Shown here: one piece after another, positions 3,301 to 60,124 of the stretch | Layout: each line of letters opens with the position of its first letter | How positions within the stretch are numbered: the first letter of the stretch is position 1 | NCBI GenBank assembly: GCA_002269645.1 | Contig: NIVC01002218.1 | Location: 1-64,000 of the forward strand | Length of the DNA stretch: 64,000 nt | Direction: 5' to 3' | Origin: Macrostomum lignano | Lineage: Eukaryota | The notes under the pieces: generated by a model | Seen by the model: the letters and a program-made list of their open reading frames with translations, nothing else | What the model was told of the DNA's origin: nothing | The model's database searches: none | Made by a program: the position numbers and the translations under genes

Positions 3301-3930
3301 GCTTGTCTTCTTCTTTGATGGGGACTTGCCAGTATCCTGAATTAAGATCTAAACTGCTAAAGTATTGGCTACTAGTTAAGTGGGAGAAGGTCTCTTGGAT
3401 GTTGGGGAGGGGGTAGGAGTAATACTTAACTCTTGAGTTGAGCATGCGGAAATCGCTAACTATTCTAATGGAACCATCTTCCTTGTGGACAATTACTAGG
3501 GGGTAGAGTAAGTTGAATAACAGGGTCTAATTAGGTTTTTAGCTAACATATCGTCTAATTGGGCATCAACTTGCTTTTGCAAGTGCGGGGAGATATGTCT
3601 AGCTGGGATTCTAATGGGGGTGGGGTCTTTGATGGCGATTTTATGGGTTACTAAGTGTGTCAGGCCCATGTCAAGTTTATTCTAGGAAAAAGCTTCATGG
3701 TTTTCTTTCATAAGATCAATGATGGCTTTATACTGTTCATTTGATGATTCAGGGCCAAGGCTCACTTCATTAATCCATGAATCTTCTGTATATTGGGTCT
3801 GGTTAACTTTTGCAAGGGGTTGGGAGCTGGGGGGTTGGGTTTGCCAATAGGTCAGGTCTTTAGCTTTCATGGGTCTAGCTAGGCTAATTAGGGAAGTCTT
3901 GGAGGATTGGAAGATGCAGGATTGGAAGAT
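315..3930 (-). mobile_element. Degenerate Ty3/Gypsy LTR-retrotransposon pol remnant (RT-RNase H-integrase N-terminus), frameshifted
   Basis: RT motifs in ORF 3026-3445 (YFSSLDLNSGYWQV, RTAF, YIDD). Next RT part in 2832-3212 (KYLGH..., SFLGLCNYY). RNase H in 2559-2795 (LDTDASDDRIGACLGQ, PIAYFSR). Manual translation of ~1720-1500 gives PLAGYLGRDKTIQRIRDRFW*PGL...ECIPC and FNHLHIDIIG (integrase Zn finger and start of core). The order RT-RH-IN is Ty3/Gypsy type. Stops and frameshifts present; outer boundaries uncertain. Confidence 0.88.
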
Positions 3931-9400: not shown

Positions 9401-10123
9401 CTGGCGTTCCGTCTCCACATAACACGAGTTGCGCTACGCGGGCCATTAGGTTGAAGGAGATGAACTTGTGATCCGATAGTGAGGACACTGGAAGCACCCG
9501 CCATGCCCCAATACTCTGGTAGAGTCTGGGCGTTGCGAGCGTAGCGTCGATCACCTCCGACCACCGTCCGTTGTCAAAGGTAGGGGTGGACCCAGAGTTG
9601 CAGAACTCGAGGGTCGTAGAGGCAACGTAGGCTAGGAGGTCTTCGCCTCTCTGATTAATGCCAGTGCTGCCCCAGTGAGTGTGGTGGGCGTTGATGTCGC
9701 CGGCAACCATGAGCTCGTAGTTTTTGGCAGAGCAGAGCTCTACCAGCGTAGCGAGGGCTCTGGGACGACCGCAGCATCGCCTGGTAGGTAAACCGAGGCA
9801 ATGAGGGTGGTCTTCCCAGGAAGAAGGTCCTCGGATTGGATGACGCAGATGTCCCTGTTGGACAGGTCCGATCTGAGCCACGCACTGAGCGTTTTGCTCG
9901 CAAAGATGCAAGCTCTGGGAGGCTAGTTGGCCTCGCGAGGGTAAGTATAAAAACAATTGTAGCCAGCAGGTGCGTTTTGAGGCTTACCTCTGAGAGTCCA
10001 GGGTTCCTGGACGAGGATGAGCCCCGGCTTGTCGAGCTCGGCGTAACGCATAAGGTTGACCGAGGCTGCGACGCAGTGCTGCAGATTAATCTGCAGGCAA
10101 TGGATTCCCTGGTTGCTGATCAT
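6420..10123 (-). pseudogene. LINE A ORF2: apurinic endonuclease, reverse transcriptase, RNase H, C-terminal Zn knuckle; disrupted
   Basis: APE: LQINLQH, LVQEPW, AGDINAHH, IDATL, SDH. RT: FRPISLTS, FLDIIGAFD, GSPQGGVLSPVLWN, GYADD. RNase H: YTDGS, QNEV, HSDSQAAL, WIPGH, NELAD. Knuckle: CPFCECDNEDAQHFVCHC. One in-frame TAG (9923-9925) and frameshifts near 9755, 9450 and 7380. Confidence 0.92.
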
Positions 10124-36400: not shown

Positions 36401-38635
36401 CGAGGCGCTGGCCAGGGCCGGGGTTCGCTACACCTATGCCTACAGCAGCCCCGCCCTGCGCTGCGTGCAGACCGCCCACCACCTGCTACAGGGCGCTGGG
36501 CAGTTCAGGCTGTCTGTACGGATTGAGCCTATGCTCAATGAGTTCCCTCACGACCATGATGATCAGGCCCAGGTGAGTGTTGGTATTATCTTAACTAATA
36601 TCGTCTGCTGTTTTATAGCTGTTCTCCCAGATCCTCAGTTGTTGGGCCAGCCTCCCAGATCCTCAGTTGCTGGGCCAGCCTCCCAGATCCTCAGTTGCTG
36701 GGCCAGCCTCCCAGATCCTCAGTTGCTGGGCCAGCCTCCCAGATCCTCAGTTGCTGGGTCAGCCTCCCAGAGTGTCAGTTGCTGGGCCAATCTCCCAGAT
36801 CCACAGTTGCTGGGCTACCGCTGAGCACTAAGTGCCTTGACCGCACAGTATCATATCTAGTATCTATGCCAGTTGAGCCTATAGTATCTGCATCAAAAAC
36901 TCTGCTTGCCCGCAGATGCCGCGTTTCATGTCGCCAACTGAGCTCAGAAGTGCGGGCTACAATGTGGACAAGGACTACCAGCCGCATTCCACTCTGGAGG
37001 GCTTCGATCGTAGAAATTCGCCCGAGAAATACCAACAGCGGGTGCGAAGGGTGTTAAAGAAAATTTTGGATTCCACTCGGAAACGGGGTGAGAGTTGATC
37101 CTAGTTTCCTGTTTATTGCCTGTTTATCTAATTGATATTAGCTGTTTAATGACCAGTTAATTTTTAATTTATCAACCAGATTAGTGGCTGTTTATCAACC
37201 AGTTTATTGCCTGTTTATCAACCAGTTTATTGCCGGTTTATCAACCAGTTTATTGGCTGTTTATCAACCAGTTTATTGCCGGTTTATCAACCAGTTTATT
37301 GCCTGTTTATCAACCAGTTTATTGCCTGTTTATCAACCAGTTTATTGCCTGTTTATCAACCAGTTTATTGCCTGTTTATCAACCAGTTTATTGCCGGTTT
37401 ATCAACCAGTTAATTGCCGGTTTATCAACCAGTTTATTGCCTGTTTATCAACCAGTTAATTGCCGGTTTATCAACTATTTTATTGCCGGTTTATCAACCA
37501 GTTTATTGCCGGTTTATCAACCAGTTTACTGGCTGTTTATCAACCAGTTTATTGCCTGTTTATCAACCTGTTTACTGGCTGTTTATCAACCAGTTTATTG
37601 CCTGTTTATCAACCTGTTTATTGCCTGTTTATCAACCAGTTTATTGCCTGTTTATCAACTATTTTATTGCCGGTTTATCAACCAGTTTATTGCCGGTTTA
37701 TCAACCAGTTTACTGGCTGTTTATCAACCAGTTTATTGCCGGTTTATCAACCAGTTTACTGGCTGTTTATCAACCAGTTTATTGCCTGTTTATCAACCTG
37801 TTTATTGCCTGTTTATCAACCAGTTTATTGCCTGTTTATCAACCAGTTTATTGCCTGTTTATCAACCAGTTTATTGCCTGTTTATCAACTATTTTATTGC
37901 CGGTTTATCAACCAGTTTATTGCCGGTTTATCAACCAGTTTACTGGCTGTTTATCAACCAGTTTATTGCCTGTTTATCAACCTGTTTATTGCCTGTTTAT
38001 CAACCAGTTTATTGCCTGTTTATCAACCAGTTTATTGCCTGTTTATCAACCAGTTTATTGCCTGTTTATCAACCAGTTAATTGCCGGTTTATCAACCAGT
38101 TTATTGCCTGTTTATCAACCAGTTTATTGCCTGTTTATCAACTATTTTATTGCCGGTTTATCAACCAGTTTATTGCCGGTTTATCAACCAGTTTACTGGC
38201 TGTTTATCAACCAGTTAATTGCCGGTTTATCAACCAGTTTATTGCCTGTTTATCAACCAGTTAATTGCCGGTTTATCAACCAGTTTATTGGCTGTGTATC
38301 AACCAGTTTATTGGCTGTGTATCAACCAGTTTATTGGCTGTTTATTAACTAATTTAGCATAACATAAGTTACAAGCATGAATTGCTTTCCTATCATTCTG
38401 ACCAGGCGGCAACATCCTGGTCGTCGGGCACCGCACCACCATCGAGTTCTGCCCCATCATACTTATGGGCTACAAGTCGTACGTGAAGCGAGTCTGCATC
38501 CCCTACAACGCCATGTTGTGTCTGGACGAGCGGCCCAAGAAAGGCACCTGGGTGCTGGCCAACCAGCCATCCGCCGCCTTCAGCTGCAACGAGCACTGCC
38601 GCTTCGATGGCTCCAGTTTGGCCTCGCCAGTCTAG
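27473..38635 (+). CDS. UBASH3: UBASH3/Sts-like protein (UBA, 2H phosphoesterase, SH3, histidine phosphatase); 8 exons, ~719 aa
   Basis: Exons 27473-27597, 28833-29352, 29869(or 29854)-30201, 31164-31213, 34329-34560, 36075-36572, 36916-37087 and 38406-38635; phases 2,0,0,2,0,0,1 all join. UBA: GQP......ALVAT...AAHWLVNH..DP. WQLRLYSRD precedes the SH3 domain; AWTLHK follows it. Phosphatase: RHGERMD, SSPALRCVQTA, IEPMLNEF, GNILVVGH. Confidence 0.88.
29372..29820. repeat. Intronic 21-bp minisatellite (cccgatcctctgatctataag)
   Basis: Fills UBASH3 intron 2. Confidence 0.95.
30250..30918. repeat. Intronic 28-bp minisatellite (ctgggccagcctcccagatcctcagttg)
   Basis: UBASH3 intron 3; the same family occurs at 36620-36815. 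Confidence 0.92.
31499..31796. mobile_element. 298-bp MITE with 14-bp TIR CATACATGCGCAAC and 8-bp TSD cttagaac (hAT- or P-type)
   Basis: Perfect TIRs; cttagaac at 31491-31498 and 31797-31804. Confidence 0.92.
32095..32530. repeat. 31-bp tandem repeat (gcctaatgcagtgttgtcagctgtgcatgtt)
   Basis: About 14 copies, intronic. Confidence 0.95.
32685..33075. repeat. GA-rich degenerate repeat (gagatcagagg...)
   Basis: Purine-rich periodic tract. Confidence 0.75.
33580..34225. repeat. 21-bp tandem repeat (atcccattcaccatctgacag)
   Basis: About 30 copies, intronic. Confidence 0.95.
35430..35680. repeat. 39-bp tandem repeat (gactgtcacatcgactgtcacagcggcgacagtttattt)
   Basis: About 6 copies, lying within a stretch bounded by gtgggactgtcac (~35261) and gtgaccgtcccac (~35784). 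Confidence 0.88.
36620..36815. repeat. 28-bp minisatellite, same family as 30250-30918
   Basis: Same consensus unit; UBASH3 intron 6. Confidence 0.9.
37170..38345. repeat. Intronic 23-bp minisatellite (gcctgtttatcaaccagtttatt)
   Basis: Fills UBASH3 intron 7. Confidence 0.95.
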
Positions 38636-38744
38636 GCTGGCTTGCCGACAGCTCGTGCACTTCATTCTGCATTCTGACCTTGAAGCACCGCTGACTGCCT
38701 GTCCTTTAGCATTCTTTTCTGGCCTTTGTGTCATTTTCCTCTGC

Positions 38745-39880
38745 CTCCACTCGCCCTACCCTTCTCCCATCTCCCCACCCTTCGCTCCCCTCTCCCTTCC
38801 CTTTCTCTCTCCTCTCCCTACCCTTCGCTCCCCTCTCCCTACCCTTCTCTCTCCTCTCCCTACTCCCTACCAGTGGTCGTGGCGGTGGCGCGAATTCGCG
38901 CCTGCGCGAAAATGGCGCGAATACGCGAATTCTGTGACCATGGCGCGAAAAATGCGGATGGCTAATGGCGCGAAAATATGAAAAATATTCCCCCATTTTT
39001 GCGCTATTTTTTCATTAAGAAGCTTTAAACTCCAGGCACCCATTTGAATAATTAAATTTCATGATGTTCTGCACCTCCATAACTATTTTTACCTTCATAT
39101 TCACATGTGCATGTCTGAATTTGTTGGGTATTCTTAGCTGTATAGTATATATAGATACCTATGGCGCGAAAAAATTTGGGTGGCGCGAAAATTTAGAAGG
39201 AGACCCGCCACGACCACTGCTCCCTACCCTTCTCTCTCCTCTCCCCACCCTCCTCTCCCCTCTGCCTACCCTTCTCTCTCCTCTCCCCACCCTCCTCTCC
39301 CCTCTCTCCTCTCCCTACCCTTCTCTCTCCTCTCCCTACCCTTCTCTCTCCTCTCCCTACCCTTCTCTCTCCTCTCCCCACCCTCCTCTCCCCTCTCCCT
39401 ACCCTTCTCTCTCCTCTCCCCACCCTCCTCTCCCCTCTCTCCTCTCCCTACCCTTCTCTCTCCTCTCCCTACCCTTCTCTCTCCTCTCCCTACCCTTCTC
39501 TCTCCTCTCCCCACCCTCCTCTCCCCTCTCCCTACCCTCCTCTCCCCTCTCCCTACCCTTCTCTCTCCTCTCCCTACCCTTCGCTCCCCTCTCCCCACCC
39601 TTCTCTCTCCTCTCCCTACCCTTCTCTCTCCTCTCCCTACCCTTCGCTCCCCTCTCCCTACCCTTCTCTCTCCTCTCCCCACCCTTCGCTCTCCTCTCCC
39701 TACCCTTCGCTCCCCACTCCCTACCCTTCTCTCTCCCTACCCTTCTCTCTCCTCTCCTTACCCTTCTCTCTCCTCTCCCTACCCTTTGCGCCCCTCTCCC
39801 TACCCTTCTCTCTCGTCTCCCTACCCTTTCTCTCCTCTCCCTGGATCTCTCCCCCTCTCCCTCTCCACTCTCCCTCCCTT
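38745..39880. repeat. CT-rich ~21-bp tandem repeat (ctctcctctccctacccttct), interrupted by a MITE
   Basis: Polypyrimidine array just 3' of UBASH3. Confidence 0.9.
38871..39219. mobile_element. 349-bp hAT-like MITE, TIR CAGTGGTCGTGGCGG, 8-bp TSD ctccctac
   Basis: 15-bp perfect TIR; ctccctac at 38863-38870 and 39220-39227; repeated subterminal GGCGCGAA motifs. Confidence 0.92.
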
Positions 39881-40574
39881 TGTCTCTGGCTGCAATTGCC
39901 ATCGGCGGTCGTTCCCAGCAATCCCTCCGCCACAACAACGTCTTTCTTCACTGTCCATCCAACAGTTATCCTCTACGAGCTTAGCTGTCAACCAGTAAAC
40001 TAATTCGCTAGATATCTGAACTGCAAAACACTTGCAGTTGCAGCTCAAGCACAGCAAATTACACTACTGCTGATAAGTAGTCTGCGATCCGCTGCAATTT
40101 AATAAAAAGTTTTTTTATTTATTTGTTTAACTTTTTGTCGCTTCCGAGCTGTTAACTTGGACCACGTTTTTTTCTATTTTCTCTCGAATATATATTTATT
40201 GATCATCTGAATGTCATTTAGCTGTCAACTTAGTTTTGAAATATTCAAAATTTCAACAGATGTTGGGCCACTTGTTGGGTTCGAAATGTTTTGCGAAGTT
40301 GCCCGCCTTCATAGTTCTCATTCAATCGTGCTTTGTTATTGTTTGCGTATTCAATCAGCTATGAGTTGTATTTTGTTTACTCTTTTCTTGTCGCTTGATT
40401 GCTTTGCCGTCTTTCTCGATTCTCTTCTGCAAAGAAGTGTAGGATAATAAAAGAATCATTTAAGCTTTTTCACAGATTTTATGATATAATAACTGTCCTG
40501 TGCGCTACTGCTTACTAATAGACTCTTATGCAGTAGTATTGTATACCACTTGCGTACCTTTGTTTTCCCAAATC

Positions 40575-43197: not shown

Positions 43198-46100
43198 TTA
43201 ACCCGATTCGTTTTCATTTTTTAGCTGAGAAATTTCAAACTCTTCGCCGTCCACAGGCGACCGCGACGGCTCCGGGTTGCCAGCCGCGACCTCCGCCCTG
43301 TGCGCCGCCTCCTGGGAGATTCGCTTCTTAGCCGCGATTCGCTGACGCGCAGTCAAAATGGCGTAGACAAGCAGCTCGATCAGCTCGCACACGGTCAGCA
43401 CTGAGATGCCCGACCAGAGGCCCAGTGCGCCTGGTGGGGTGTTCGCTTAGTTTTTTGTTGCATATAGTCTAGCACCCTTTCAAGCCTCTCCACTAGCACA
43501 CTCTATCGCCTGTTGCCCTGTGTTTTTCCACCCCCTCAGCCCATAGCCCCACTCCACTCCCTGCCACTCTGTGTTTTTCTATCCCCTCAGCCCATAGCCC
43601 ACCCCACTCCCTGCCACTCTGTGTTTTTCTATCCCCTCAGCCCATAGCCCACCCCACTCCCTGCCACTCTGTGTTTTTCCACCCCCTTCAGCCCATAGCC
43701 CCACTCCACTCCCTGCCACTCTGTGTTTTTCTACCCCCTCAGCCCATAGCCCCACTCCACTCCCTGCCACTCTGTGTTTTTCTACCCCCCTCAGCCCATA
43801 GCCCCACTCCACTCCCTGCCACTCTGTGTTTTTCTACCCCCCTCAGCCCATAGCCCACCCCACTCCCTGCCACTCTGTGTTTTTCTACCCCCCTCAGCCC
43901 ATAGCCCCACTCCACTCCCTGCCACTCTGTGTTTTTCTACCCCCTCAGCCCATAGCCCACCCCACTCCCTGCCACTCTGTGTTTTTCTACCCCTCAGCCC
44001 ATAGCCCCACTCCACTCCCTGCCACTCTGTGTTTTTCTACCCCCTCAGCCCATAGCCCCACTCCACTCCCTGCCACTCTGTGTTTTTCTACCCCCCTCAG
44101 CCCATAGCCCCACTCCACTCCCTGCCACTTGTGTTTTTCTACCCCCCTCAGCCCATAGCCCCACTCCACTCCCTGCCACTCTGTGTTTTTCTACCCCCCT
44201 CAGCCCATATCCCCACTCCACTCCCTGCCACTCTGTGTTTTTCTACCCCCCTCAGCCCATAGCCCCACTCCACTCCCTGCCACTCTGTGTTTTTCTACCC
44301 CCCTCAGCCCATATCCCCACTCCACTCCCTGCCACTCTGTGTTTTTCTACCCCCTCAGCCCATAGCCCCACTCCACTCCCTGCCACTCTGTGTTTTTCTA
44401 CCCCCCTCAGCCCATAGCCCCACTCCACTCCCTGCCACTCTGTGTTTTTCTACCCCCCTCAGCCCATAGCCCACCCCACTCCCTGCCACTCTGTGTTTTT
44501 CTACCCCCCTCAGCCCATAGCCCCACTCCACTCCCTGCCACTCTGTGTTTTTCTACCCCCCTCAGCCCATAGCCCACCCCACTCCCTGCCACTCTGTGTT
44601 TTTCTACCCCCTCAGCCCATAGCCCCACTCCACTCCCTGCCACTCTGTGTTTTTCTACCCCCCTCAGCCCATAGCCCCACTCCACTCCCTGCCACTCTGT
44701 GTTTTTCTACCCCCCTCAGCCCATAGCCCCACTCCACTCCCTGCCACTTGTGTTTTTCTACCCCCCTCAGCCCATAGCCCCACTCCACTCCCTGCCACTC
44801 TGTGTTTTTCTACCCCCCTCAGCCCATAGCCCCACTCCACTCCCTGCCACTCTGTGTTTTTCTACCCCCCTCAGCCCATAGCCCCACTCCACTCCCTGCC
44901 ACTCTGTGTTTTTCTACCCCCTCAGCCCATAGCCCCACTCCACTCCCTGCCACTCTGTGTTTTTCTACCCCCCTCAGCCCATAGCCCACCCCACTCCCTG
45001 CCACTCTGTGTTTTTCTACCCCCCTCAGCCCATAGCCCCACCTCACTCCCTGTTTTTCTACCCTCTTTTTCCCATAGCCCCAACCACTCCCTGCGCTGTT
45101 TTTCTACCTCTTCATCCTCTAACCCCCCACATCCCTGTTTTTACTCCTCACCATATAGCCCCACACCACTCTCTGTATTTAAACCTCACAGTACCATAAC
45201 TTGTTGCGCAAAAAAACATCACGTGACCGCGAGCAGGCCAGCTTTCATACTCACCGCCAAGATTGGCCATCAAGTTCTTAGTAGTATAGGACGGCTCCTC
45301 GGTCATCTCTTGACCAAAGTCGCTCAAAGCCTGAATGGAGATCTTAGCCAAACTTCGCTCCACATTCTGGAGCTCGTTTGTAAACTCCAGCATCTCGTTA
45401 GCTGATAAATTGGACCGTCTAGCCTGAACCTCCTTGGTCCTGATGTCCATGTAGAACAGATTGGCTACGCCCTTGGAGAATAGGAAATTGTAGGGATAGG
45501 ACCAATCGCCCAGGCTATTGTGCAGAAAGTCCGTAGCGGAGTCAATAGTGAGGCCTGGCCAAGGATAAGTGACGGGTCTGATGGCGTACGACCTCCGCTC
45601 GCACATGTCCAGACAGAGCTGCCTGGCCTCCATCTCGTAGCGGGAGATTGAAGCCATGAGCCGCATGTAGCAGGCCTCAGTGCTCTCAATGCTGAGTAGA
45701 TCCGTCTTGTCATCGAAGCAGTAGTTATAAGTTGGAAAGAATTCCACTGGTATGGGCAGGAAGGAGGGCAGGCACCCGCAGTGCTGGATGAATTTGTGCA
45801 CCGCATAGGTGTTCACGCAGTCGCGCCTGGTGGCTCTCGAGAAATGAATTGTCTGATTCATTTCGCTGCTGCAATCAATCATTTGGTGGGGGGTGCGATG
45901 CCATTGCTTCAGTATGCAGCTTTTGTGCAGTGATATCTGTAAGTTTGCCGTCACTTTATGCAGGTAATTGGCGTCTTCTACTTGTAATTGCCGTCATTTT
46001 ACAGGTAATTGGCGTCTTCTACTTGTAATTGCCATCATTTTACAGGTAATTGGTATCATTATACAAGTAATTGGTATCATTCTACAGGTAATTTGCATCA

Positions 46101-49100
46101 TTCTACAGGTAATTGGTATCATTCTACAGGTAATTGGTATTATTCTACAGGTAATTGGTATCATTCTACAGGTAATTGGTATCATTCTACAGGTAATTGG
46201 TATTATTCTACAGGTAATTGGTATTATTCTACAGGTAATTGGTATCATTCTACAGGTAATTGGTATCATTCTACAGGTAATTGGTATCATTCTACAGGTA
46301 ATTGGTATTATTCTACAGGTAATTGGTATCATTCTACAGGTAATTGGTATCATTCTACAGGTAATTGGTATTATTCTACAGGTAATTGGTATTATTCTAC
46401 AGGTAATTGGTATCATTCTACAGGTAATTGGTATCATTCTACAGGTAATTGGTATCATTCTAAAGATACGTAATTGGCGTCATTCTACACGTAAAGTGGC
46501 GTCATTCTACAGGCAAGCTTACATGCTGGCATTCAGGCTCATCAGGATGCTTTCAAGAATTTGTGTCTTTTTCGCCCAATCCGCCGTGTTTTTCAGCTCG
46601 GTAATATTCACTGATTGCCTAAAAATCAAAGGTTAAATAATCGGATAAATGCTACTAATAAATTGAAACTACTAGTAGTAGGCTAAACGGCCATATTCGC
46701 ACAATCTTCAGAAATAGCTTACAAAGCCTGCGGCGTGTAACGCCAGCTTGACTGCCAAGACGGCAGCCGGTAGGTGACGTCATTCTTACTCTGATTGCAG
46801 GCCTGATCCGGGGGCTTTGAGAACCGGTTCACTTTGTCGTAGCGCATTCGCAGCTCCAGGTGCTGGCCAGGGCTGGCTGTCAGGGCCTTGTCTCGCCAGG
46901 GAAATTGGCCGACTGGAACAACTACCACCTGTGCATTGGATTTTGGTGGATTACAGACAGGTGCTGATATTGTCTAGCAGGTGTTTATACTGTGTCTAAC
47001 AGGCGCTGATACTGTGTCTAACAGGTGCTGATACTGTGTCTAACAAATGCTGATATTGTGTCTAACAGGTGCTGATATTGTCTAACACGTGCTGATATTG
47101 CCTAACAGGTATTGATACTGTGTCTAACAGGTGCTGATATTGTCTAACAGGTGCTGATATTGTCTAACATGTGCTGATATTGTCTAACAGATGTCTAACA
47201 GGTGTCTAACAGGTGTTTAACAGAACGTCTGTTACCTGCATTGCGCTGAAACTGTCGTCATTGGGATTTTCAACGCCTGGGAAGACCACCCGGGACATTC
47301 GATCAATTCCCGGCAGCTGCTGTCCCAGAGAGTCCGTGGCATCCGTGAAGTAGCTCACAGTCAGCGTGGAATCTGTCGCCTTCACGTCCTTGCTCTGCTG
47401 CACCCATTTCTCCTGGTTGAACCGGTGGCAGACGCCGAATTCCGGATGGAACACCGTCGTGAAGTCGTCGATAGTGCACAGATGCTCGCCAAAGGTGCAG
47501 CCCGTGAAGCCGATGCCCATGCTGCTGCTGAACCGGCTGGCCAGCAGGGCGCTGCCGATGCGGTCCCGAACCAGGCCCGGGATGCTCTTCGTCTTGCGGG
47601 CTGCGGTTTGTGTCCGAGAATGGATGTGTCCGAGAATAGGTGTGTCCGAGACTGGGTGTGTCCGAAACTGGGTGTGTCTAAAACTGGGTGTGCCTGAGAC
47701 TGAGTGTGTCCAAAACTGCATGGGTGTGTCCGAGACTGGGTGTGTCCGAAACTGCACGAGTGTGTCTGAGACTTGGTGTGTCTGAGACTGGATGTGTCCG
47801 AGACTGGGTGTGTCCGAGACTTGGTGTGCCCGAGATTGGTGTGTCCGAGACTGGGTGTCCAAGATTGAGTATCCGAGATTTGGTGGGTCCGACACTAGGT
47901 GTCCGAGACCTTACGAGTATCCGAGACTGGGAAATTGTACTGGGAAAATTGCATTGTCCAGTCTATAGAATACTATGTACAGTACTGGAGTCCTTGCATT
48001 GTCCTTGCAGGTCTCCGAGACTAGGTGGCTAGACTGGGTGTTCGAGAATATTTAATTTCTGGAAAACAGGGAGAACATTCTGGAGGACGCTTTACATATT
48101 TTTGGTTTATGTAGAGCGCGATACTACTCACAGCAGGCATCGATGCTGCATGAGCTTAGTAGTATCTCGTCATTGGTGATTGAAATCGGACAGACTGGTT
48201 TAGCGGTGTCCACTATAGTTGTCCGGCTGAAAAAGTTAGCGCAAAATTATTTGTTATTATTCTGTAACTTTATTAACTATATAAACTCAAAGATGACTTT
48301 TCTACTGGTAGTGGTTTGGATTTGGTTTTCAAGTATTTAAGTTTTTAATTGCATTGTCCAGTTAATAAAATACTATGTACTGGGTAAATTGCATTGTCCA
48401 GTCCATAGAATACTGTGTACTGCATAGGGTCCTTGCATTGTCCAGTCCATAGAATACTGTGTACTGCATAGGGTCCTTGCATTGTCCAGTCCATAGAATA
48501 CTGTGTACTGCATAGGGTCCTTGCATTGCGCAGTCTATAGAATAATATACTACGTTGACGATTACAGATGTTATATCCAAAGCTCGCTTACATGAAGTAA
48601 TGTCGGCCGGTCTTCTGCTCGGTTACCGCTGCATCCAGAAGAACCCTGGCCGCTCGACAGAAATTGTTCGCCTTCCTGCCATTGGTGTACAGCTCGAAGT
48701 CCGGGGTTTCGATGTACACATCAAGGATATTGACTGGAAGGGGGGCGTATGTCAGACAGTCACGGGATGACAGCTGTGTGTCAGACAGTTATGGGATGAC
48801 AGCTGTGTGTCAGACAGTTATGGGATGACAGCTGTGTGTCAGACAGTCACGGGATGACAGCTGTGTGTCAGACAGTCATGGGATGACAGCTGTGTGTCAG
48901 ACAGTCACGGGATGACAGCTGTGTGTCAGACAGTCACGGGATGACAGCTGTGTGTCAGACAGTCACGGGATGACAGCTGTGTGTCAGACAGTCACGGGAT
49001 GACAGCTGTGTGTCAGACAGTCACAGTATGTATCAGTATTCCAGACTTCGGGGTGCTTCAGGATATCTGAACTAATTAAAAGATGTGTCAGGAAGTCTAA

Positions 49101-52100
49101 CACGGCGGTGCAGTGGAATGCATTGAAGGTCTACCAGCGCTCACCAGTCAGGATGGAGGGTTCAGCATCGAAGCGGAAGGTCCGAGAGCCGTTAAGAAGC
49201 GCCTGTCGCATCGCAGTCCAGTCTATGCAGGAGTCCTTGGTGTTGGTGAGGCTCTTGTAGCCAGTGTAGCGCAGGTACTCCCCGCTGCTCACCTGGTCCT
49301 CGCTATTTAATGCCAAACAGTCAAACCCGGGCGAGATCGCTGGTGAAAGATTAACAAAAAAAATGAAATTTAATTTTAGTCGAAATACAACGTATTCTTT
49401 GCGATACAGTCTACTACAGTGCGATACAGTCTACTACAGTGCGATACAGTCTACTACAGTGCGATACAGTCTACTACAGTGTGATTTAGTCTACTACAGT
49501 GCGATAGTCTACTACAGTGGGATACAGTCTACTACAGTGCGATACAGTCTACTACAGTGTGATACAGTCTACTACAGTGTGATACAGTCTACTACAGTGT
49601 GATGTAGTCTACTACAGTGCGATACAGTCTATTACAGTGTGATGTAGTCTACTACAGTGTGATACAGTCTACTACAGTGCGATACAGTCTACTACAGTGC
49701 GATACAGTCTACTACAGTGCGATACAGTCTACTACAGTGCGATACAGTCTACTACAGTGTGATACAGTCTACTACAGTGTGATACAGTCTACTACAGTGC
49801 GATACAGTCTACTACAGTGCGATACAGTCTACTACAGTGCGATGTAGTCTACTACAGTGTGATACAACCTACTACAGTAGCTAGTAAAGGCTTACGACAG
49901 AACGGTACGTTGCAGTAGGTGGCTGACAGCTGTCCGCTGTTGCCTCTATAGAAGCAGTAAGGGCCTTCGTTGAAACTGTCGATTGAAGCTCGGAAAGGAA
50001 TGAACAGCGGGTTGGAACCTGCCCGAATCGGGTTGGAGGCTTTGGTGTGCTTTTGGCTCAATAACTCACCCATGAACTCACTCATGAACTCACTCATGAA
50101 CTCACCCATGAACTCACTCATGAACTCACTCATGAACTCACCCATGAACTCACTCATGAACTCACTCATGAACTCACCCATGAACTCATTAAAGAACTCA
50201 CTCATGAACTCACCCATGAACTCATTAAAGAACTCATGAACATTCACTCTCTTCCATTCACCCAACATACTGATCAGCCCACTCGCATTAAACCGCCAAA
50301 TCGCACCTGAGCTCCGAACTTGATAGACAATCGCGGCAGCGTCTCCGCCGCAGGCTTCGGCGATATTTCCCCGGCACTTCCGGTTGCAAGCGAAGTCACT
50401 AAGGGACAGCGCGGTGACATTGCTGACCTCTTCACCGCAGAGGCACTGGTCACCGTGCAGAGCCATGTAGGTGTAATTGGCCACGTAGCAGCACTCCGCG
50501 CAGCGCTCGTGATTCATCCAACCGTATGGATCTTGCAGGCACAGGTGCGGAAAGTCCGCTGCACTCGCATTTTTATCCAGACAGCCAACGTACAGGTGCA
50601 TCTGGTCTGGAATATGGTGACTCATTCTCTGGTGCACAAGCTTTAATTTCTCTACCCCCAATGAGTGTACATTGGTGACTCATTCTCCAGCGCACAAGCC
50701 TCAATTTCTCTACCCCAAAAAGTGTACATTGGTGACTCATTCTTTAGGGCACAAGCCTTAATTTCTCTACCCCCAATGAGTGTACATTGGTGACTCATTC
50801 TCCAGCGCACAAGCCTCAATTTCTCTACCCCAAAAAGTGTACATTGGTGACTCATTCTTTAGGGCACAAGCCTCAATTTCTCTACCCCCAATGAGTGTAC
50901 ATTGGTGACTCATTCTCCAGCGCAGAAGCCTCAATTTCTCTACCCCCAAAAAGTGTACATTGGTGACTCATTCTTTAGGGCACAGCTAGCCTTAATTTCT
51001 CTACTCCCAATGAGTGTACATTGGTGACTCATTCTCCAGCGCACAAACCTCAATTTCTCTATCCCCAATGAGTGTACATTGATGACAAATGCTTTCCTAG
51101 CCTGCACCCTCGCAAAAACATGCAATCCTAAAACATAGGCTATTAATCGCAATCTCAGTTATTTTAACAGGCTGAAAAAGGCTCACTCACGAGTGGAATT
51201 ATCTTGAAAACTCTTCAGTGGCAAACCGCGGGGCTGCCTGCACCTGCTGTCGTCCTCGGAGTAGCCAATGGCCAAGATTTGAGCTGCCAGCGGCACCCCA
51301 GCGGCCTGAAGCTCCCTGGCCGCAGAATTCCAGCCGATGCAGTTAGCGGTGGACAAGTAGGGAGCAATTTTTGGCAGATTATTCATGTCGGACACTGGTT
51401 CCCTGACCTGGGCGGTGCCGAACAGATGTACGATGGACAAGTTTCCTATGTACTCTTCTCCGCCAAGTGTTGTACGGCAGGTGCTGACAGGGGCTAAAAT
51501 AACCGCAAGTGAAAATAACTAAGTAATACTAGAATGTTGCTACTACCGCGTGTCTAAGAAGTACATAGTGGGATCCTGGGCAATATACTGTGGTTTATTT
51601 TTTGTTCCTACTTGACACAATTTAATCACATTTTATGAAATGATTGTTGCCTTATTATTTGTCTATCCTCTATCTGTCTTATATGCATGCACAAAGGGCT
51701 TTAGCACCAGGGGCGCCAGCACCAGGGGCGCCAGCACCAGGGGCGCCAGCACCAGGGGCGCCAGCACCAGGGGCGCCAGCACCAGGGGCGCCAGCACCAG
51801 GGGCGCCAGCACCAGGGGCGCCAGCACCAGGGGCGCCAGCACCATGGCCAAAAGCATCACAGAATCGCAGTTTCCTCACTGTTCTTTCCATAGTGCAAGG
51901 ACTGCGAGATGTTGCTCTCAACTGCCGAGATCACGTGCAGCAGCCCCTGGGCAGCCGGTCCATACTGGGCAGCGCTAGTCGTGCCGGATTCTGGGCTCCA
52001 ATGGATGTCGAATTTCAGCTGCTTCTTGCAGTCGGTGTCGCAGGTCAGGGCCCTGGTCAGCTCTTTGATGTTCACCTGGAATGTTGTAAAATATGGCGCT

Positions 52101-52536
52101 ACGCCTGCAGCAATGGCGCCAGCCAGAAGGGGCACCAGCAAGAACTTCAGTTACTGTAAACTACGGGCGTACCGGTGCACACGTACAGTTGAAATACATC
52201 AGTGCATAAATTGTCATAGCAACCTCGATCCTCAGAGCGCCTCACCTGCGGACTTGCCCGACTCATAGTAACCAAATCGGTCGGGCAAAAGTACACGTCG
52301 GGAAACTCGAACGGCAACGAAGTGCTCAGACTAGTTCTCAGAGGCACCGCGGCGAACTGCTGGCCGAGGCTGTACATGTGGAAAGTGAAGCCGCCGTAGG
52401 TGCCCAGCAGGAAGCAGATCCACAGGCCGCGGCCGATGGCGCCAGTCTGGGCCCCGAAGCGGCCGAGCCCGTGCGCGGTAGTGTAACCGCAGAACTGCCG
52501 CATCAGCGACTCGTCATCTTCTTCTTTGGTTGCCAT
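43198..52536 (-). CDS. DEG/ENaC (ASIC/FaNaC-superfamily) channel subunit with an inserted kringle-WSC-kringle extracellular module; 13 exons, ~1064 aa
   Basis: Exons in transcript order: 52536-52246, 52075-51880, 51493-51191, 50606-50271, 50018-49896, 49339-49145, 48733-48592, 48226-48132, 47600-47236, 46928-46723, 46618-46523, 45868-45255, 43430-43198. All are GT-AG; phases 0,1,1,1,1,1,2,1,0,2,2,1 give one ORF of 3195 nt. Channel motifs: FCGYTTAHG (HG), TM1 LWICFLL..., FPDVYFC, CTFGEHLC..DF...HPEFGVCHRFN, FPW.....SPG, CGCLP, TM2 LMANLGGALGLWSGISVLTVCELIEL. Exact splice sites around 50271/50018 have in-phase alternatives. Confidence 0.88.
43525..45080. repeat. Intronic 52-bp minisatellite (ctgccactctgtgtttttctacccccctcagcccatagccccactccactcc)
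   Basis: About 30 copies filling the last channel intron. Confidence 0.95.
45960..46500. repeat. Intronic 21-bp minisatellite (ttctacaggtaattggtatca)
   Basis: Channel intron 11. Confidence 0.95.
46965..47215. repeat. Intronic 20-22-bp repeat (gtgctgatattgtctaacag)
   Basis: Channel intron 9. Confidence 0.88.
47615..47930. repeat. Intronic degenerate repeat (gtgtccgagactggg-like)
   Basis: Channel intron 8. Confidence 0.8.
48350..48550. repeat. 44-bp tandem repeat (gcattgtccagtccatagaatactgtgtactgcatagggtcctt)
   Basis: About 4 copies; a related copy at ~47945-48010 lies on the other side of exon 48132-48226. Confidence 0.85.
48750..49025. repeat. Intronic 29-bp minisatellite (gacagtcacgggatgacagctgtgtgtca)
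   Basis: About 9 copies. Confidence 0.95.
49400..49865. repeat. Intronic 20-bp minisatellite (gatacagtctactacagtgc)
   Basis: About 23 copies. Confidence 0.95.
50060..50240. repeat. 12-bp tandem repeat (catgaactcact/cacc)
   Basis: Lies in the presumed intron between the WSC exon and the kringle C-terminal exon; the frame stays open. Confidence 0.9.
50271..50606 (-). other. WSC domain exon of the channel
   Basis: YVGCLD...MNHERCAECC..ANYTYMALHGDQCLCG...ACNRKCRGNIAEACGG....VY matches the WSC consensus YxGC...MTxExC..C...Y.Y.G...ECxCG...C...CxG...xCGG...VY. Confidence 0.88.
50640..51080. repeat. Intronic ~57/58-bp repeat with alternating A/B units (~115-bp higher-order dimer)
   Basis: Units alternate aatgagtgtac...ctccagcgc and aaaaagtgtac...ctttagggc. 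Confidence 0.88.
51705..51845. repeat. Perfect 15-bp tandem repeat (gcaccaggggcgcca) x9
   Basis: Channel intron 2. Confidence 0.95.
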
Positions 52537-53389: not shown

Positions 53390-54821
53390 AGGTCCTTAAT
53401 CCTCAAGCTTAGTGGCTTGCTCAAAACCTGCAATTTGTTCTGTGTGGGTTAAGAATCGAACCCCCGACCTTTCTAATCGCTATCGCTGTGTATAAAATAG
53501 TGTAGGCAAATTCGGTATTCGCGGGTGGATTCTCTATTGGTGTGAATTGTGATTCAGGTGGAATTTGCGTTTTTTAGGTTGCAGCTGTGCACACGACCGG
53601 GTGCACTTTGGCGACTGGCTGACTGTATAAATTTAGACTTAAGGCCTCCCTTCCCCTTTCCTTGTCGTTTGTCTTCCCCGTACTTGTGTTTTGATTGACT
53701 GCGGCTCTCCTCGCTCTCGCACTACTCGCTGTTTTTGCGTGTGGCATTAGTTTGAATTCTATGTAAAAAGTGACTGAATTAGTCACAATCGGGTGTGCGC
53801 AACAGAGAACGATCAAGTTTTGTGAACATGTGAAGATCGATCGCGTCAAATTTGGTCTGGCTGTCACTATAAAATTTACTGAAACAAGTAGTATGCGAAG
53901 CTTACATTGTGCATCAACCTGCAACTAGCATGGGTACGGAACCAACCGCGGGTAATCATAGGCCGGTGGATTCTGTAATACACTGTATGTCTACAGATTA
54001 TAGATTACATGTTCATACTGTACACATGTTTTTGTTGAGCCATCATGTACATGCATGTAATGCGGGCTAGGCGGATTCTGTGTATTTGGGTGCTATTGTG
54101 GCGGATCCCGCTTCGGGCGGGTTACGCTTACGGCGGATATAAACGATATTGATCAGGGGGGACTACATACACTGCATGTTACAATTGCAGATATAGCAAT
54201 CACGGGACTCGTAGGAGACTATAAATCATGAAATTTAGAACTATTTTGGATCCAGTAGTAACTTAGTAAGTACTTTACTGGAACAGGTAGCTTTAAAACC
54301 TAAGTACACACAATTGTATGCACGAGTGTTAATTCTAAATAATTAAAATTTGAAATGAAAAAATGCATTTATGCATTTAAAATTTTAGCGAGTTATATTT
54401 AGGAATTTACGATTGATTTTAAAACAAATGATGTCAAAAAGTTTCACACGTTTTACTTAAAAAACCCTTGATTGTTTTTAGAGCATACAAATTGTAAAAG
54501 TTTTTTATGAATACAAAGAAAATTACTTTTAACTAAGAGCTGGTGTACGCTGACTGTATCTTAGGAATATTTCCAATTTAATAAGCCCACTCACAATTTG
54601 CTAAGCACAAATTTCTTAGAAAGACGTAAACACCCTTTCCTGTCCGTTTGGTAGTCAGCTGATCTTCTTCCTTGTTAGTTTAAAAAAAGTTTCCTGTTTA
54701 GAAACCTAAAGCTGTTTTTTGCAATATTTCGTTGTTTTTCTGTATGTTTTCTAGAATTCAAGTAGCTTGCTGAGTTACTAGGTAGTTTTATTCAATTTAC
54801 TTTGTGTGCTTTCACTTCAGA

Positions 54822-57800
54822 ATGGCAAGTAGTGCAAACAGCAAGGAATTTATTGTTAATCAAAAATATCGTCTTATTAAGAAAATTGGAAGTGGTTCAT
54901 TTGGAGAAATCTACCTCGGTGTAAACCAAACAAATGGAGAGGTATGGATGTTTTTATTTGAATTTACTGTTTAAATATTGTTGACAATGTTGTGATAAAA
55001 TTTAACTTTAATGTTTTTTATTAGTTTTCAGCTTAGTTTTGAAGTTTGTACATTATTATTAGCCTAACCTCTATTGCTTCCAAACTTAAGATCATATTAA
55101 GTAATGGGCTTTTAACAGTCCAAATTTAACTATAGTGCATGCTAGAAGTTTAAAGAAGAATAACATCTTATTCTTATTTTGGCTCCAGGATGGAATTCTT
55201 GCTTGGGGGTAGGAAAACGCACACGCATGTTTTTGGAGCAGCACGCAAGTGTGCACACCAGCTGTAAAAAATTCATAAAGCAGATCATGGCAGGCCCATG
55301 CACTAAAAATGAAATTTCTAGTTTTTCAATTCTTATGCCAACGTAAACTAGAAAGTTGTACTTTAAGTGTAAAGTAGCTTGATCACTATAATTTTTACAG
55401 AAAATATTCTTTAAAAATTATAAGAGTTTCACTAAACTTTAAAGTAACTATTTTTGCTAAAAACTATTCTTCTTTGTTTTACTTTTGTTTAAAATTTTCT
55501 GGCATAAAAACAACCTTCTAGACTAGGCCTATAAAAAGTAGGAGAACTTGAGCGCGCATATACTACATGGCATATAACCATGTTGAATGCATATAAAAGT
55601 CAAATCCTATTTGTGATTCTGCGGCAAACAGCTTCTTTGCAAGCGCATATGATGGAGTAAGCATACACCTTTAAGAGCGCGCAAGTAGGCTCCTTTTCAG
55701 TGCGCAAGCGGGCACAAATTTGACAAGCGCGCACAAATGCGTAACAACTTTTGTGCAAGAATTCCATCCTGGTTTTGGCTCCTAGCTAGGCCTAAATATT
55801 TGAATACATGCTAGTATATACATACATACATATATGAAAAATTCCTCATTGGCTTTTGTTTTTTGTATTTTTTCATTTTAATAAAAATAAATTAATAGCT
55901 TTATTAGGCTTTCTAGTTTTGTAGGCAGTAGGCTTAGTCTTAGCCTTCCTATTATTTTTTTTAATTTAGAAACAACTGGAAGTTGGAAGCCTATACTCTA
56001 TATTCTCAAAGGCGCATATATAAGGTGGCCACACCAAGGTAGCTACAACCTATAGGTATAGCTCTAAATTGGCTTATACAAAGAGAGATAGCTTTTAACT
56101 TTTTTTAAATTACTATTGTAGCTCTAGGTGCAACCCATTTTGGCAAAGGAATTTTTAGCAAAAATGCTACACTCAGGAAGGTGTACATTATGGTGGAAAA
56201 TTCCGGCAGACATCAACGAAAAATATGTGCAAAGTGGCGCACACGGTGAACAACAAAGGCTTAGCAGAAGTTTTTAGCGCACAGTGGTACATAGCAAAAC
56301 CTAATCAGAAAAATTTAGCTCACAATGAGTCACCTAAATGTATAATCTGCATATGCAGTGCATAAAATAAGCTTTAAGATTACGTTTTTTCCAAGCATAT
56401 CAATAAAAAATTGTTGTTTCTTGGTAAGTGAAATGAATAATAAAATTCAAAATGGGATTTTCCCGTAAAGTTAAAGCTATTTCTTTTGAGAATTTTCTAC
56501 GTGAGCTAAAAAAAGCAAAAGTTTTGAGTTAAAAAAAGCCTACATAAGGTACGAAAATTTATCCGTTTTTTTAGTTTTGTTTTAATTGGATTTTTACTGA
56601 GTTTTTAGTGCTACAGCGCATTAGTTAGCTATGTATTTGTCAATAAACGAATGTACACCTCGGTGCACAAATTCATATTTTAGCTTCGCGCACAGCGCAC
56701 ACTCCAAAAATATGCTGAAATATTATGTTGAGTAGTCAAGAAATGTTAAGCAAGTAATCTGCACATTTTTATGCAGCATTTTTTATAGTCATACTGTCAT
56801 AATGTCATTTTATATAAAGATATATATGAATATATTGTATCATAAATAATTTATATTATTTTTAAATGTTTTTATTACTTTATTTGAAATTAAATAATAA
56901 ATAATAATCAAAATAAATGAATAATATTAAAGTAATAAAAATATACTAATAAATTTTTGCTTATATGTGTCATTCCATGAGAGTTCTATGAAACAAAGGC
57001 TGCAGCACTAAGTTGTCTAGCTAAGTTGTAATTGCCAAATATGACATCCATATTTCTAGGAGTGTCTAGCTGTAGTTGCAGCTGGTTAGCTAGCCAAATT
57101 CTTGTATAAGGATCTGAAGAAATTCTTAGATGGAATAAAAAAATAGTGATAATATTTCCAGTTAGTGTTCCATTTAGTTATTTTTTGTATAATAATACCA
57201 AGATGTGCACAACAATACAACTGATACAATTGTTAAAAAAAGGAAAATGCCTTGTTGAAATTTCATTGCCATATTGATATTTCATATATTGAAGGGCATT
57301 TTTACCCTATATATATTATCTATATAAACACCCATAAAAATACTCAACTTTTCAACTTGACCTGAGTAAAATTTCTTGACAGTCAAGTAGTTGAAAAAAG
57401 AGTAAATTACTCAACATGTAGAATACTCAGTTGAGTACTTGTTTGGCCTCTAGCAACAAGGTCCTAAACCTAGGTAGTCTAATACTATATGCCCATAGTC
57501 TATAATATAAGGCAGCTTTTATGCTAAAATTTTGCCTCTTACTAAGGATCTTAATATAGCAAAAATGGCCAAGTTCAGGTTTGGCATATATGGTATAGCC
57601 TAATTGTGATTAAAGAAAACTTTTTAAAATAAAAATTCATACATGCGCAACCTTGGGAATCACTTGGCCATTTCTTTTGGCAACACACACATGTAAGTCG
57701 CTATTGGCTGAGAGCAGTCACGTGACTACTATTCCATCCAATAGCAACTTACATGTGTGTGTTGTCAATAGAAATGGCTGGGTGAATCCTTAGGTTATGC

Positions 57801-60124
57801 CCAAGCATGTAAAAATTGTTAGCAACTTATAGAGAGTAAAATTAAAAGGAGGATTATAAACTTCTATAAAAAACAAACACTTTAAAGTTTAATAAAACTC
57901 TCACTTCAAAGAATATATTGATATTATAAGAAAATTAGCATGAAAGCACCTTATTCTTGGCAAATTTTTTGATTTATAGAGGCAAAGAATAAAAAAACTA
58001 GAATTTTCATTCCAGCATATAATTACTGTCTAGTAGGATTAAGATGGAAAATTTTTAGAAAAATGCTACATATTTTGCAAGTGAGCTAAAAATGTAATTG
58101 TATAACAAAACTTTATAACATAAAATCCACTGTGAAATTACATTAAAAAGTGCAAATGTGCAATTGGTAAGATAATGCTTGAATGTGTAAAACAAATTTC
58201 AACCTCAAACAAACAAAAACAGACATTCAAGCCTTCAACCCCCAGTTAAAGTGATTACCTTCAATTACACCAAGCCTATTTAAAAATGCTTTTAGGAAAT
58301 CGCAGTTAAGCTGGAAAGTCAGAAGGCCCGCCATCCGCAGTTGCTCTATGAAAGCAAGCTGTACAAACTGCTTCAAGGTGGCATCGGCATACCTCATGTT
58401 CGGTGAGTGCTTTTCACTCATTGGCAAGCGCTTCAGAATGGGATAGATTTAAAGAACCTTGATAGTTACTAACGGGTAATTCCATGTAACCCACTTAAAC
58501 TTAGCTGGTTCGGCGTAGAAAAAGACTACAATGTGCTGGTGATGGACCTGCTCGGGCCCAGCCTTGAGGATCTGTTCAGCTTCTGCTCACGGCGATTCAC
58601 GATGAAGACTGTGCTGATGCTGGCCGATCAGATGATCAACAGAATCGAATACGTGCACAATAAGAACTTTATCCATCGCGACATCAAGCCGGACAACTTC
58701 CTCATGGGCATTGGGCGGCACTGCAACAAGGTGAGCTAAATGCAGGTAGTTATGTTGTAAACTCTAGACTGTTAGACTCGCCACCAAAGTCAGGGCCGCT
58801 GTACAGTACAGTATTGACGCTGTAAAATTGACGCTGACGCTGAATTGCCTCAGCGATGGTAAAAACTTTAACTAACTCTCAAGCATTTTAATATCCCGCA
58901 GGTGTTCATCATCGACTTTGGCTTAGCCAAGAAGTACCGGGACAGTCGCTCCGGCAAGCACATCCCCTACCGGTGCGTTTCCTTATTTTTAATCATCATT
59001 TTTATGTTCAAAATGTCGGTTATGCTACTTACAGTAGAAAAATTAGCGTCCAGTCAGAAAATCAGCTCAAAGTTAACTCAAATCCGCAGCGAGGACAAGA
59101 ACTTGACTGGCACGGCCAGGTACGCCTCTATCAATGCCCATTTAGGCATTGAGCAATCGCGCCGAGACGATATGGAGGCCTTGGGCTACGTGCTCATGTA
59201 CTTTAATCGCGGCTCACTGCCCTGGCAGGGTTTGCAGGTCAGAATTTTTTTGTATTGTTAATATTCCAGGTTGACACCAGCATCCCAGGTTGACACCAGC
59301 ATCCCAGGTTGACACCAGCATCCCAGGTTGACCCCAGCATCCCAGGTTGACACCAGCATCCCAGATTGACCCCAGCATCCCAGATTGACCCCAGCATCCC
59401 AGGTTGACACCAGCATCCTATGTTAACCCAAATACCCCAGGTTGACCCAACTACCCGAGGTGAACTCAAATACCTAAAGTTGACCCAAACACCCCAGGTT
59501 GACCCAAACACCACAGGTTGACCCAAACACCCCAGGTTGACCCAAACACTCAAGGTTGACTCAAACACCCCAGGTTGACCCAAACACTCAAGGTTGACTC
59601 AAACACCCCAGGTTGACCCAAACACTCAAGGTTGACCCAAACACCCCAGGTTGACCCAAACACCCCAGGTTGACCCAAACACTCAAGGTTGACTCAAACA
59701 CTCAAGGTTGACCCAAACACTCAAGGTTGACCCAAACACTCAAGGTTGACTCAAACACCCCAGGTTGACCCAAACACTCAAGGTTGACCCAAACACTCAA
59801 GGTTGACCAACGAACCCCCTCTTCTGTACATTCAAACTGTTGCAGGCTGCTAACAAGAAGCAGAAGTACCAGAAGATCAGTGAAAAGAAAATGTCCACCC
59901 CAGTTGAAGGCCTGTGCAAAGGCTTCCCTGCCGAGTTCACCATGTACTTGAACTACTGCCGCGGCCTGCGGTTCGAGGAGGCGCCGGACTACATGTACCT
60001 GAGGCAGCTGTTCCGCATCCTGTTCCGCACGCTCAACCATCAGTTTGACTACACCTTCGACTGGACTCTGCTCAAACAGCGCAGCAACGCTTCAGCCGCA
60101 GCCGCCTCCGCCAGTCAGCAGTGA
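54822..60124 (+). CDS. CSNK1A1: Casein kinase I alpha; 6 exons, 316 aa
   Basis: Exons 54822-54941, 58296-58402, 58505-58730, 58902-58972, 59090-59237 and 59846-60124; phases join. [70 protein letters not shown] and [15 protein letters not shown] match CK1 alpha. Confidence 0.97.
55185..55772. mobile_element. 588-bp MITE, TIR CCAGGATGGAATTCTTGC, 8-bp TSD ttttggct
   Basis: 18-bp perfect TIR; ttttggct at 55177-55184 and 55773-55780; lies in CK1 intron 1. Confidence 0.88.
57638..57809. mobile_element. 172-bp palindromic MITE (reverse copy of 5124-5295), 8-bp TSD taaaaatt
   Basis: taaaaatt at 57630-57637 and 57810-57817; sequence is the near reverse complement of the 5124 copy. Confidence 0.9.
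59265..59810. repeat. Intronic 19-bp minisatellite, grading from ttgacaccagcatcccagg to ttgacccaaacactcaagg
   Basis: Fills CK1 intron 5. Confidence 0.92.

Follow-up and report, generated by a model that had tools for sequence, protein, structure and literature searches.

A WSC domain exon nested within a putative kringle-like module in the ectodomain of a Macrostomum lignano DEG/ENaC channel

Introduction

Kringles and other small, disulfide-rich extracellular modules are classic examples of exon shuffling, a process in which whole modules are moved and lined up next to one another. The question raised by the locus described here is whether such a module can also be opened by another domain, in this case a WSC domain lying between the two halves of a kringle. 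The locus is found in a stretch of 64,000 nucleotides of Macrostomum lignano (NCBI GenBank assembly GCA_002269645.1, contig NIVC01002218.1, positions 1 to 64,000), hereafter referred to as the window. A first-pass annotation of this stretch, made from the sequence alone, had proposed that a complete WSC domain, on an exon of its own, interrupts a kringle between its third and fourth cysteines.

To our knowledge, Kremen is the one well-known family that combines a kringle and a WSC domain in an ectodomain. WSC domains, which are of a sugar-binding type, are found in surface sensors and in Kremen, and polycystin-1 likewise has one, while kringles are binding modules. The host of the interrupted module turned out to be a channel of the DEG/ENaC family, whose extracellular finger domain is a site of action for peptides, protons, proteases and mechanical tethers.

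In this work, we examined the exon structure of the locus, its host gene, the similarity of the sequences flanking the WSC domain to known kringles, and the conservation of the arrangement among paralogues. The nested exon arrangement was confirmed, and the interpretation originally given to it was partly supported. We consider it probable that the protein carries a divergent kringle-like module (K1) with a WSC domain in its Cys3-Cys4 loop, followed by a second kringle-like module (K2), and that all of these occupy the finger region of a DEG/ENaC channel.

Results

A complete WSC domain lies between the halves of a six-cysteine module

Three exons, here named A, B and C, make up the interrupted module; all are on the minus strand and of phase 1-1, with AG at the acceptor and GT at the donor of every one. 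Exon A (51191..51493, 303 nt) encodes the N-terminal half of K1, including Cys1 (CRTTLGGEEYIG), Cys2 (CIGW) and Cys3 (CRQP), and its translation contains C-RTTLGGEEYIG, then 33 residues, C-IGWNSAA and, further downstream, SR-C-RQPRGLPLKSF. The complete WSC domain, which contains ten cysteines, is on exon B (50307..50606, 300 nt), and exon C (49896..50018, 123 nt) encodes the C-terminal half of K1, with Cys4 (GPYCFY) and Cys5/Cys6 (YCNVPFC); the translation of exon C (GPYCFYRGNSGQLSATYCNVPFC) aligns with the GPWCF...YCDIPRC segment of plasminogen. The coordinates agree with the first-pass annotation, and so does the position of the WSC domain between Cys3 and Cys4, as read from the sequence.

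The identity of the inserted domain was supported by several searches. Pfam recognized WSC (PF01822) in exon B over the full profile (1-82 of 82; E=3.1e-12, 47 bits against a cut-off of 27.8), with scores ranging over 40-47 bits, and the exon B sequence matched the structure of yeast Wsc1 (7pz2) with E=2e-6. When a structure model of the module was searched with Foldseek, Wsc1 (7pz2) and the WSC domain of Kremen (5fws) were both retrieved at probability 1.00, Wsc1 being the best match with a template modelling score of 0.63 to the target.

Around this domain, the six cysteines of K1 are arranged in the order known from kringles, together with the motifs YxG, CxxW, CRxP, PWC and CxxPxC. The cysteine counts also bear on how the exons may work together: exons A and C each contribute three invariant cysteines, whereas the WSC exon has ten. 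With these odd and even numbers, exons A and C need each other for complete pairing, and the WSC domain can pair its cysteines internally. K1 extends over 237 residues (Cys168 to Cys404) with the WSC domain inside, and over about 143 residues without it, compared with the contiguous unit of about 80 residues that is expected of a kringle.

The host gene encodes a DEG/ENaC channel

Exons A, B and C were found to be part of the interior of a gene for a DEG/ENaC channel; this context was absent from the first-pass annotation. The gene model comprises 13 exons (52536 to 43198), all with GT-AG borders, which give a single open reading frame of 1052 amino acids. In this protein, Pfam identified ASC (PF00858) with E=1.6e-38 and 133.4 bits against a cut-off of 23.6; two transmembrane segments, the HG motif (TAHGLGRF), FPDVYFCP, and GLWSGIS in the second transmembrane segment (TM2) were also present. 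The nearest solved structures were FaNaC (E=8e-12), ASIC5 and ENaC gamma. By its domain content, the protein is a subunit of the DEG/ENaC (amiloride-sensitive sodium channel) family.

The comparison with FaNaC further located the insertion within the channel. Two conserved blocks that are separated by about 50 residues in FaNaC are about 480 residues apart in the M. lignano protein, which places the whole cysteine-rich module in the variable finger region of the ectodomain, between the strand following the first transmembrane segment (TM1; FPDVYFC) and the CxFxGxxC...FN block. The module comprises about 390 residues and contains, in order, the split K1 with the WSC domain inside it and the divergent but uninterrupted kringle-like K2. 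A separate Kremen-like gene nested within the channel gene was considered and rejected: the frame and phase of the exons match those of the channel exons, neither a separate start codon nor a signal peptide accompanies them, and annotated channel transcripts include them.

The joined K1 halves show profile similarity to kringles

As a reference, we used an alignment of 16 human kringles, all 16 of which were confirmed as Kringle by Pfam (best E=7e-33). A K1 family profile from which the WSC domain had been removed aligned to this reference in hhalign with a probability of 94.5%, E=7.5e-8 and a score of 45.0. As controls, 100 column shuffles of the K1 profile reached at most 25.6 (mean 11.4, standard deviation 2.6), and reversing the profile gave a score of 11.3. 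Each half also aligned by itself, the N-terminal one with a score of 26.3 (E=1.8e-4) and the C-terminal one with 30.2 (E=2.9e-6), so that the joined score is roughly additive. The aligned pieces follow the kringle order, with Cys2 and Cys3 in the first half and Cys4, Cys5 and Cys6 in the second. Consistently, when a custom kringle hidden Markov model (HMM) was used, the six K1 sequences of the family all scored 10.7-16.3 bits, each above its own 200 shuffles, with matches made of three collinear pieces spanning Cys2 to Cys6. Searched against Pfam without the WSC domain, two of the six family sequences matched Kringle (best E=0.044), and no other family was retrieved; the best match in a PDB profile search, although non-significant, was a plasminogen kringle.

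A second kringle-like module follows K1

K2 is encoded by exons D, E and F and extends from Cys412 to Cys548, a span of 137 residues rather than the contiguous 80 or so of a kringle. Its similarity to kringles was established independently: Pfam matched Kringle in seven of the eight family members (best E=2.1e-4), 58 of the 59 matches in a PDB profile search were kringle proteins (HGF, tPA, ROR1 and prothrombin; best E=1.6e-4), and the hhalign comparison gave a probability of 95.1% with E=3.4e-8. Moreover, K1 and K2 could be aligned with one another once the WSC domain had been deleted from K1, and the alignment spanned the point of deletion (E=1.8e-4). Both the joined K1 halves and K2 show significant collinear similarity to kringles at the profile level. 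The K2 of the window (48132-49339) is the only one of the eight without a Pfam Kringle match, and it is also the most divergent copy, with KPVC and CSIDAC in place of PxC and CxIPxC.

The intron positions of both modules were compared. The phase 2 intron at the junction of exons E and F (48592/48226) falls in the same Cys3-Cys4 loop of K2, about six aligned residues from the point at which K1 is interrupted (phase 1; 51191/50018). Such proximity is a hint that the WSC exon was inserted into an intron that was ancestrally present in this loop.

Structure models

Structure prediction of the module with AlphaFold2 depended on the depth of the alignment. With three sequences, the predicted local distance difference test score (pLDDT) was 43.7, and Foldseek gave nothing but noise, for example RNA polymerase and PTP1B; with nine sequences, the pLDDT rose to 64.0, with a predicted template modelling score of 0.57. 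In the latter model, the WSC part and the hairpin of the K1 C-terminal half were predicted at a pLDDT of about 75-83, and the C-terminal half formed the expected beta-hairpin (pLDDT about 75). In the structural check suggested by the first-pass annotation, the model (pLDDT 64) matched known WSC structures and no kringle.

The arrangement is retained in transcript models and in paralogues

The GenBank protein BOX15_Mlig007204g1 of M. lignano (P0001, 1052 amino acids) is collinear with our model and has the same exon order, with ten substitutions and no insertions or deletions. The GenBank annotation of the M. lignano assembly was built from genome-guided RNA-seq transcriptome assemblies, and the assembly itself contains many near-identical duplicated blocks (PMC5730564). 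As this annotation of a near-identical copy is based on transcripts, the order of N-terminal half, WSC domain and C-terminal half has support at the transcript level; the annotated transcript model keeps this order.

In M. lignano, the same layout is common to at least six paralogues, with identities of 30-40% (P0002, P0003, P0006, P0007/P0154 and P0152), and additional fragments of the family were found in this species (P0008 and P0037). No match was obtained when proteins were searched with the peptide spliced from A+B+C alone; the full-length model was required as the query for these relatives to surface. When the module profile was searched against 1.84 billion representative proteins, the flanks of the WSC domain were matched solely by proteins of the M. 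lignano family among the 150 best matches listed, the remaining ones covering the WSC part only. One candidate, P0106, seemed to combine a WSC domain with the C-terminal half of K1 and the start of K2, and turned out to be an ordinary multi-WSC protein. Databases already list the members of the family, labelled either as hypothetical or as 'WSC domain-containing', with their kringle-like parts unannotated.

Conservation within the family extends to the gene structure. At the locus encoding P0002 (L001), a paralogue with 32% identity, a separate exon likewise encodes the WSC domain, and the introns on either side of this exon are located at the same aligned codons. Because intron positions and layout are kept in such divergent paralogues, the arrangement predates the expansion of the family. 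All six K1 cysteines and their flanking motifs are invariant among paralogues of 30-40% identity; overall, the cysteines are invariant in the six family members available for K1 and in the eight available for K2.

Remaining exons and introns of the channel gene

Upstream of K1, exon 1 (52246..52536, minus strand, as are all the exons of the gene) includes the start codon and encodes the cytoplasmic N-terminus, where the HG motif (TAHGLGRF) is located, followed by TM1 and FPDVYFCP; it is recognized as ASC by Pfam and aligns to FaNaC residues 66-155. Exon 2 (51880..52075, phase 0-1) begins the extracellular finger region and has no recognisable domain, its equivalent being fused to exon 1 in the paralogue P0002. 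K2 is distributed over exon D (49145..49339, phase 1-1), with Cys1 and Cys2 (YLRYTGYKSLTNTKDSCIDW), exon E (48592..48733, phase 1-2), which contains the middle part and Cys3 (NNFCR), and exon F (48132..48226, phase 2-1), with the C-terminal part, namely Cys4 (KPVC) and Cys5/Cys6 (SCSIDAC). The donor of exon E was selected to preserve the reading frame and agrees with the GenBank model P0001.

Downstream of K2, the conserved DEG/ENaC ectodomain resumes in exon G (47236..47600; GCTFGEHLCTIDDFTTVFHPEFGVCHRFN), which aligns to FaNaC residues 207-240, and continues through exon H (46723..46928), exon I (46523..46618, phase 2-2; also included in P0001) and exon J (45255..45868), which covers the thumb and palm region, contains the best Pfam ASC stretch, and whose acceptor was set to match P0001. 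Finally, exon K (43198..43430) encodes TM2 with GALGLWSGIS, the cytoplasmic C-terminus and the stop codon.

Across the introns of the gene (43518-51844), nearly every one consists mostly of its own minisatellite, including a 52-bp unit repeated 30 times at 43518-45094, 21 bp repeated 26 times at 45961-46513, 20 bp repeated 24 times at 49400-49878, and 58 bp repeated eight times at 50615-51086. The intron between exons B and C contains a 12/36-bp array (50063-50236) that is in frame with both exons and free of stop codons, so that retention of this intron would still leave an open reading frame.

Other features of the window

The channel gene adjoins a casein-kinase-1-like protein kinase gene on the plus strand (approximately 54800-60100), made of several exons, with an N-terminal exon near 54786-54971 and Pfam Pkinase matches at 58473-58736. 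Remains of retroelements were identified on the minus strand at 2562-3526 and 6423-9573, in a GC-rich region (0.55-0.62); one has RVT_1 and RT_RNaseH_2 domains, of the long terminal repeat type, and another has RVT_1 and RNase_H in long open reading frames. Very strong negative GC skew was observed over tandem arrays, reaching -0.5 at 38000-40000 and -0.4 at 44000-46000. The translated frames of the array at 38.7-40.0 kb are GERRV/GRERRE-type repeats, and the array at 44-45 kb is the 52-bp intronic minisatellite mentioned above.

Discussion

Several observations weigh against the reading of a kringle-like K1 that holds the WSC domain. After in silico removal of the WSC domain, a check that the first-pass annotation had itself proposed, the joined halves of the window gave no Pfam Kringle match, nor did the K2 of the window, and every family member scored below the Pfam Kringle gathering score (34.3 bits). 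The PDB profile search with K1 was non-significant (E=0.3-0.6), with talin matches mixed among those retrieved; hhalign left the Cys1 region unaligned, and K1 has about 23 extra residues in its first loop, between the YxG motif and Cys2. Furthermore, Foldseek found no kringle in either of the AlphaFold2 models, whose confidence was low to moderate, and two helices absent from canonical kringles were predicted between Cys2 and Cys3. In addition, two UniProt models from one paralogue group (P0153 and P0015) lack the equivalent of exon C and pass directly from the WSC domain to K2. The kringle reading is thus supported by sequence and not by structure.

One alternative follows directly from these points, namely that the flanks are a lineage-specific cysteine-rich linker or finger sequence surrounding the WSC domain, with motifs (CRxP, GPYCF and CxVPxC) that are convergent or due to chance. 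Such an origin would fit the Pfam, PDB and Foldseek results just described, as well as the length of about 143 residues left when the WSC domain is removed. Nevertheless, it appears unlikely, considering that the profile-profile score of 45 contrasts with a shuffle maximum of 25.6, that both halves match in the right order with additive scores, and that Kringle was the sole family retrieved by Pfam and nearly the sole one in the PDB searches. The adjoining K2, which is independently kringle-like and aligns with K1, and the six invariant cysteines in kringle order also argue against it. With motifs and cysteines invariant at 30-40% identity and scores far above those of shuffles, chance as such would be excluded as the source of the kringle-like motifs, as judged from sequence comparisons. 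Accordingly, part of what the first-pass annotation said of the flanks held, as the joined halves of the family match kringle profiles in the right order, and part did not, given the missing Pfam match for the halves of the window itself.

The remaining alternatives concern how the parts came together and whether they are used together. The nested order might have arisen from a partial duplication or rearrangement instead of an insertion, in which a truncated kringle N-terminal half, a WSC domain and a copied kringle C-terminal exon were juxtaposed, and the product may not fold as one unit. The C-terminal half of K1 does align with the corresponding part of K2, and the intron in the Cys3-Cys4 loop of K2 means that a C-terminal kringle exon existed and could have been copied. 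Against such a history, which we judge improbable, stand the cysteine parity of exons A and C, the invariance of the six cysteines across old paralogues, and the fact that the C-terminal half of K1 (GPYCF, CNVPFC) is nearer to canonical kringles than that of K2 (KPVC, CSIDAC), so that it is not a recent copy of the latter. It is also very improbable that the arrangement is an artefact of the gene model, with A, B and C not all present in one mature mRNA, owing for instance to alternative use of the WSC exon or of exon C, and the nested protein not being the main product. Since all three exons have phase 1-1, skipping any of them would keep the frame, and models without the exon C equivalent exist (P0153 and P0015). 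However, the transcript-based GenBank models P0001, P0002, P0003 and P0154/P0007 all contain the N-terminal half, the WSC domain and the C-terminal half (PMC5730564), and the three cysteines in each of exons A and C argue for their joint use. Besides, P0152, from the same paralogue group as P0153 and P0015, has the C-terminal half of K1, and the UniProt A0A1I8... models are visibly fragmentary. The loss of this half in P0153 and P0015, which would leave three K1 cysteines unpaired, probably reflects either exon skipping or misprediction.

We therefore return to a divergent kringle-like K1 holding the WSC domain as the probable reading. According to it, the two K1 halves would fold together as one triple-disulfide unit, and the WSC domain would be an excursion of a surface loop of K1. 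As to its origin, it would be reasonable to suppose that a phase 1-1 exon encoding the WSC domain entered an intron of the Cys3-Cys4 loop prior to the expansion of the family; exon shuffling as the process, and a WSC domain displayed at the tip of a kringle stalk, both put forward by the first-pass annotation, are treated here as inferences.

K1 and K2 share with other kringles (PF00051; plasminogen, tPA, prothrombin, HGF, ROR1/2 and Kremen) the order of the six cysteines and the motifs G-x-x-Y-x-G, C-x-x-W, C-R-x-P, G-P-[WY]-C and C-x-[IV]-P-x-C. They differ from them in that the Cys3-Cys4 loop of K1 holds about 100 residues of WSC plus linkers, that the lysine-binding site RNPD and Trp62 are not kept in K1 (RQPRGLPL, and Tyr for Trp), and that K2 is about 60 residues longer. 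The combination of kringle and WSC in an ectodomain is shared with Kremen1/2 (kringle, WSC and CUB; Wnt/Dkk co-receptor; PDB 5FWS). In Kremen, however, the WSC domain follows a contiguous kringle, whereas in M. lignano it is found inside the kringle-like module, in a protein that has no CUB match and is a DEG/ENaC channel with two transmembrane segments rather than a receptor crossing the membrane once; the sequences gave no evidence that it descends directly from Kremen. The WSC fold is also shared with yeast Wsc1 (PDB 7PZ2), a mechanosensor at the cell surface, which is compatible with a tether role; Wsc1, unlike the M. lignano protein, is a single-pass sensor of the fungal wall, while the WSC domain of M. 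lignano has ten cysteines and is placed within a further domain of an ion channel.

Regarding the channel itself, the protein resembles ASIC, ENaC, FaNaC, MEC-4 and pickpocket (PF00858) in its HG motif and TM1, FPxVxxC, CxFxGxxC...FN, cysteine-rich thumb, and TM2 with GLWxGxS, and differs from them in a finger of about 480 residues, as opposed to about 50-200, which contains two kringle-like domains and a WSC domain. In the literature searched, we found neither a DEG/ENaC channel described as having WSC or kringle modules nor a kringle described as having another domain inserted in it; phylogenies have included DEG/ENaC genes of M. lignano, and a small number of these genes were tested for peptide gating, with this architecture unmentioned. 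The nested layout thus appears unusual, and it was seen in the M. lignano lineage.

Surface sensors and Kremen contain WSC domains, kringles serve as binding modules, and the finger is an input site for gating; our preferred guess for the module is therefore a putative extracellular tether or sensor for glycans or matrix, acting outside the cell as a binding element coupled to gating via the finger domain. Going further, and only tentatively, these subunits may carry their own tether or ligand sensor, in which the WSC domain on a kringle-like scaffold would bind glycans or matrix and pass the pull, or the binding of a ligand, on to the gate; we regard this as doubtful at present. If true, it would represent a natural 'domain-in-domain-in-channel' allosteric switch, arising from the insertion of an exon into a small disulfide-knotted module.

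For modules that are otherwise shuffled whole, a kringle split by a phase 1-1 WSC exon, if true, would indicate that shuffling can also nest domains within such units. Furthermore, a finger built from recognisable binding modules would offer a natural system for the study of tethered or ligand-coupled gating, and a genetically tractable one, since transgenesis and RNA interference are available in M. lignano.

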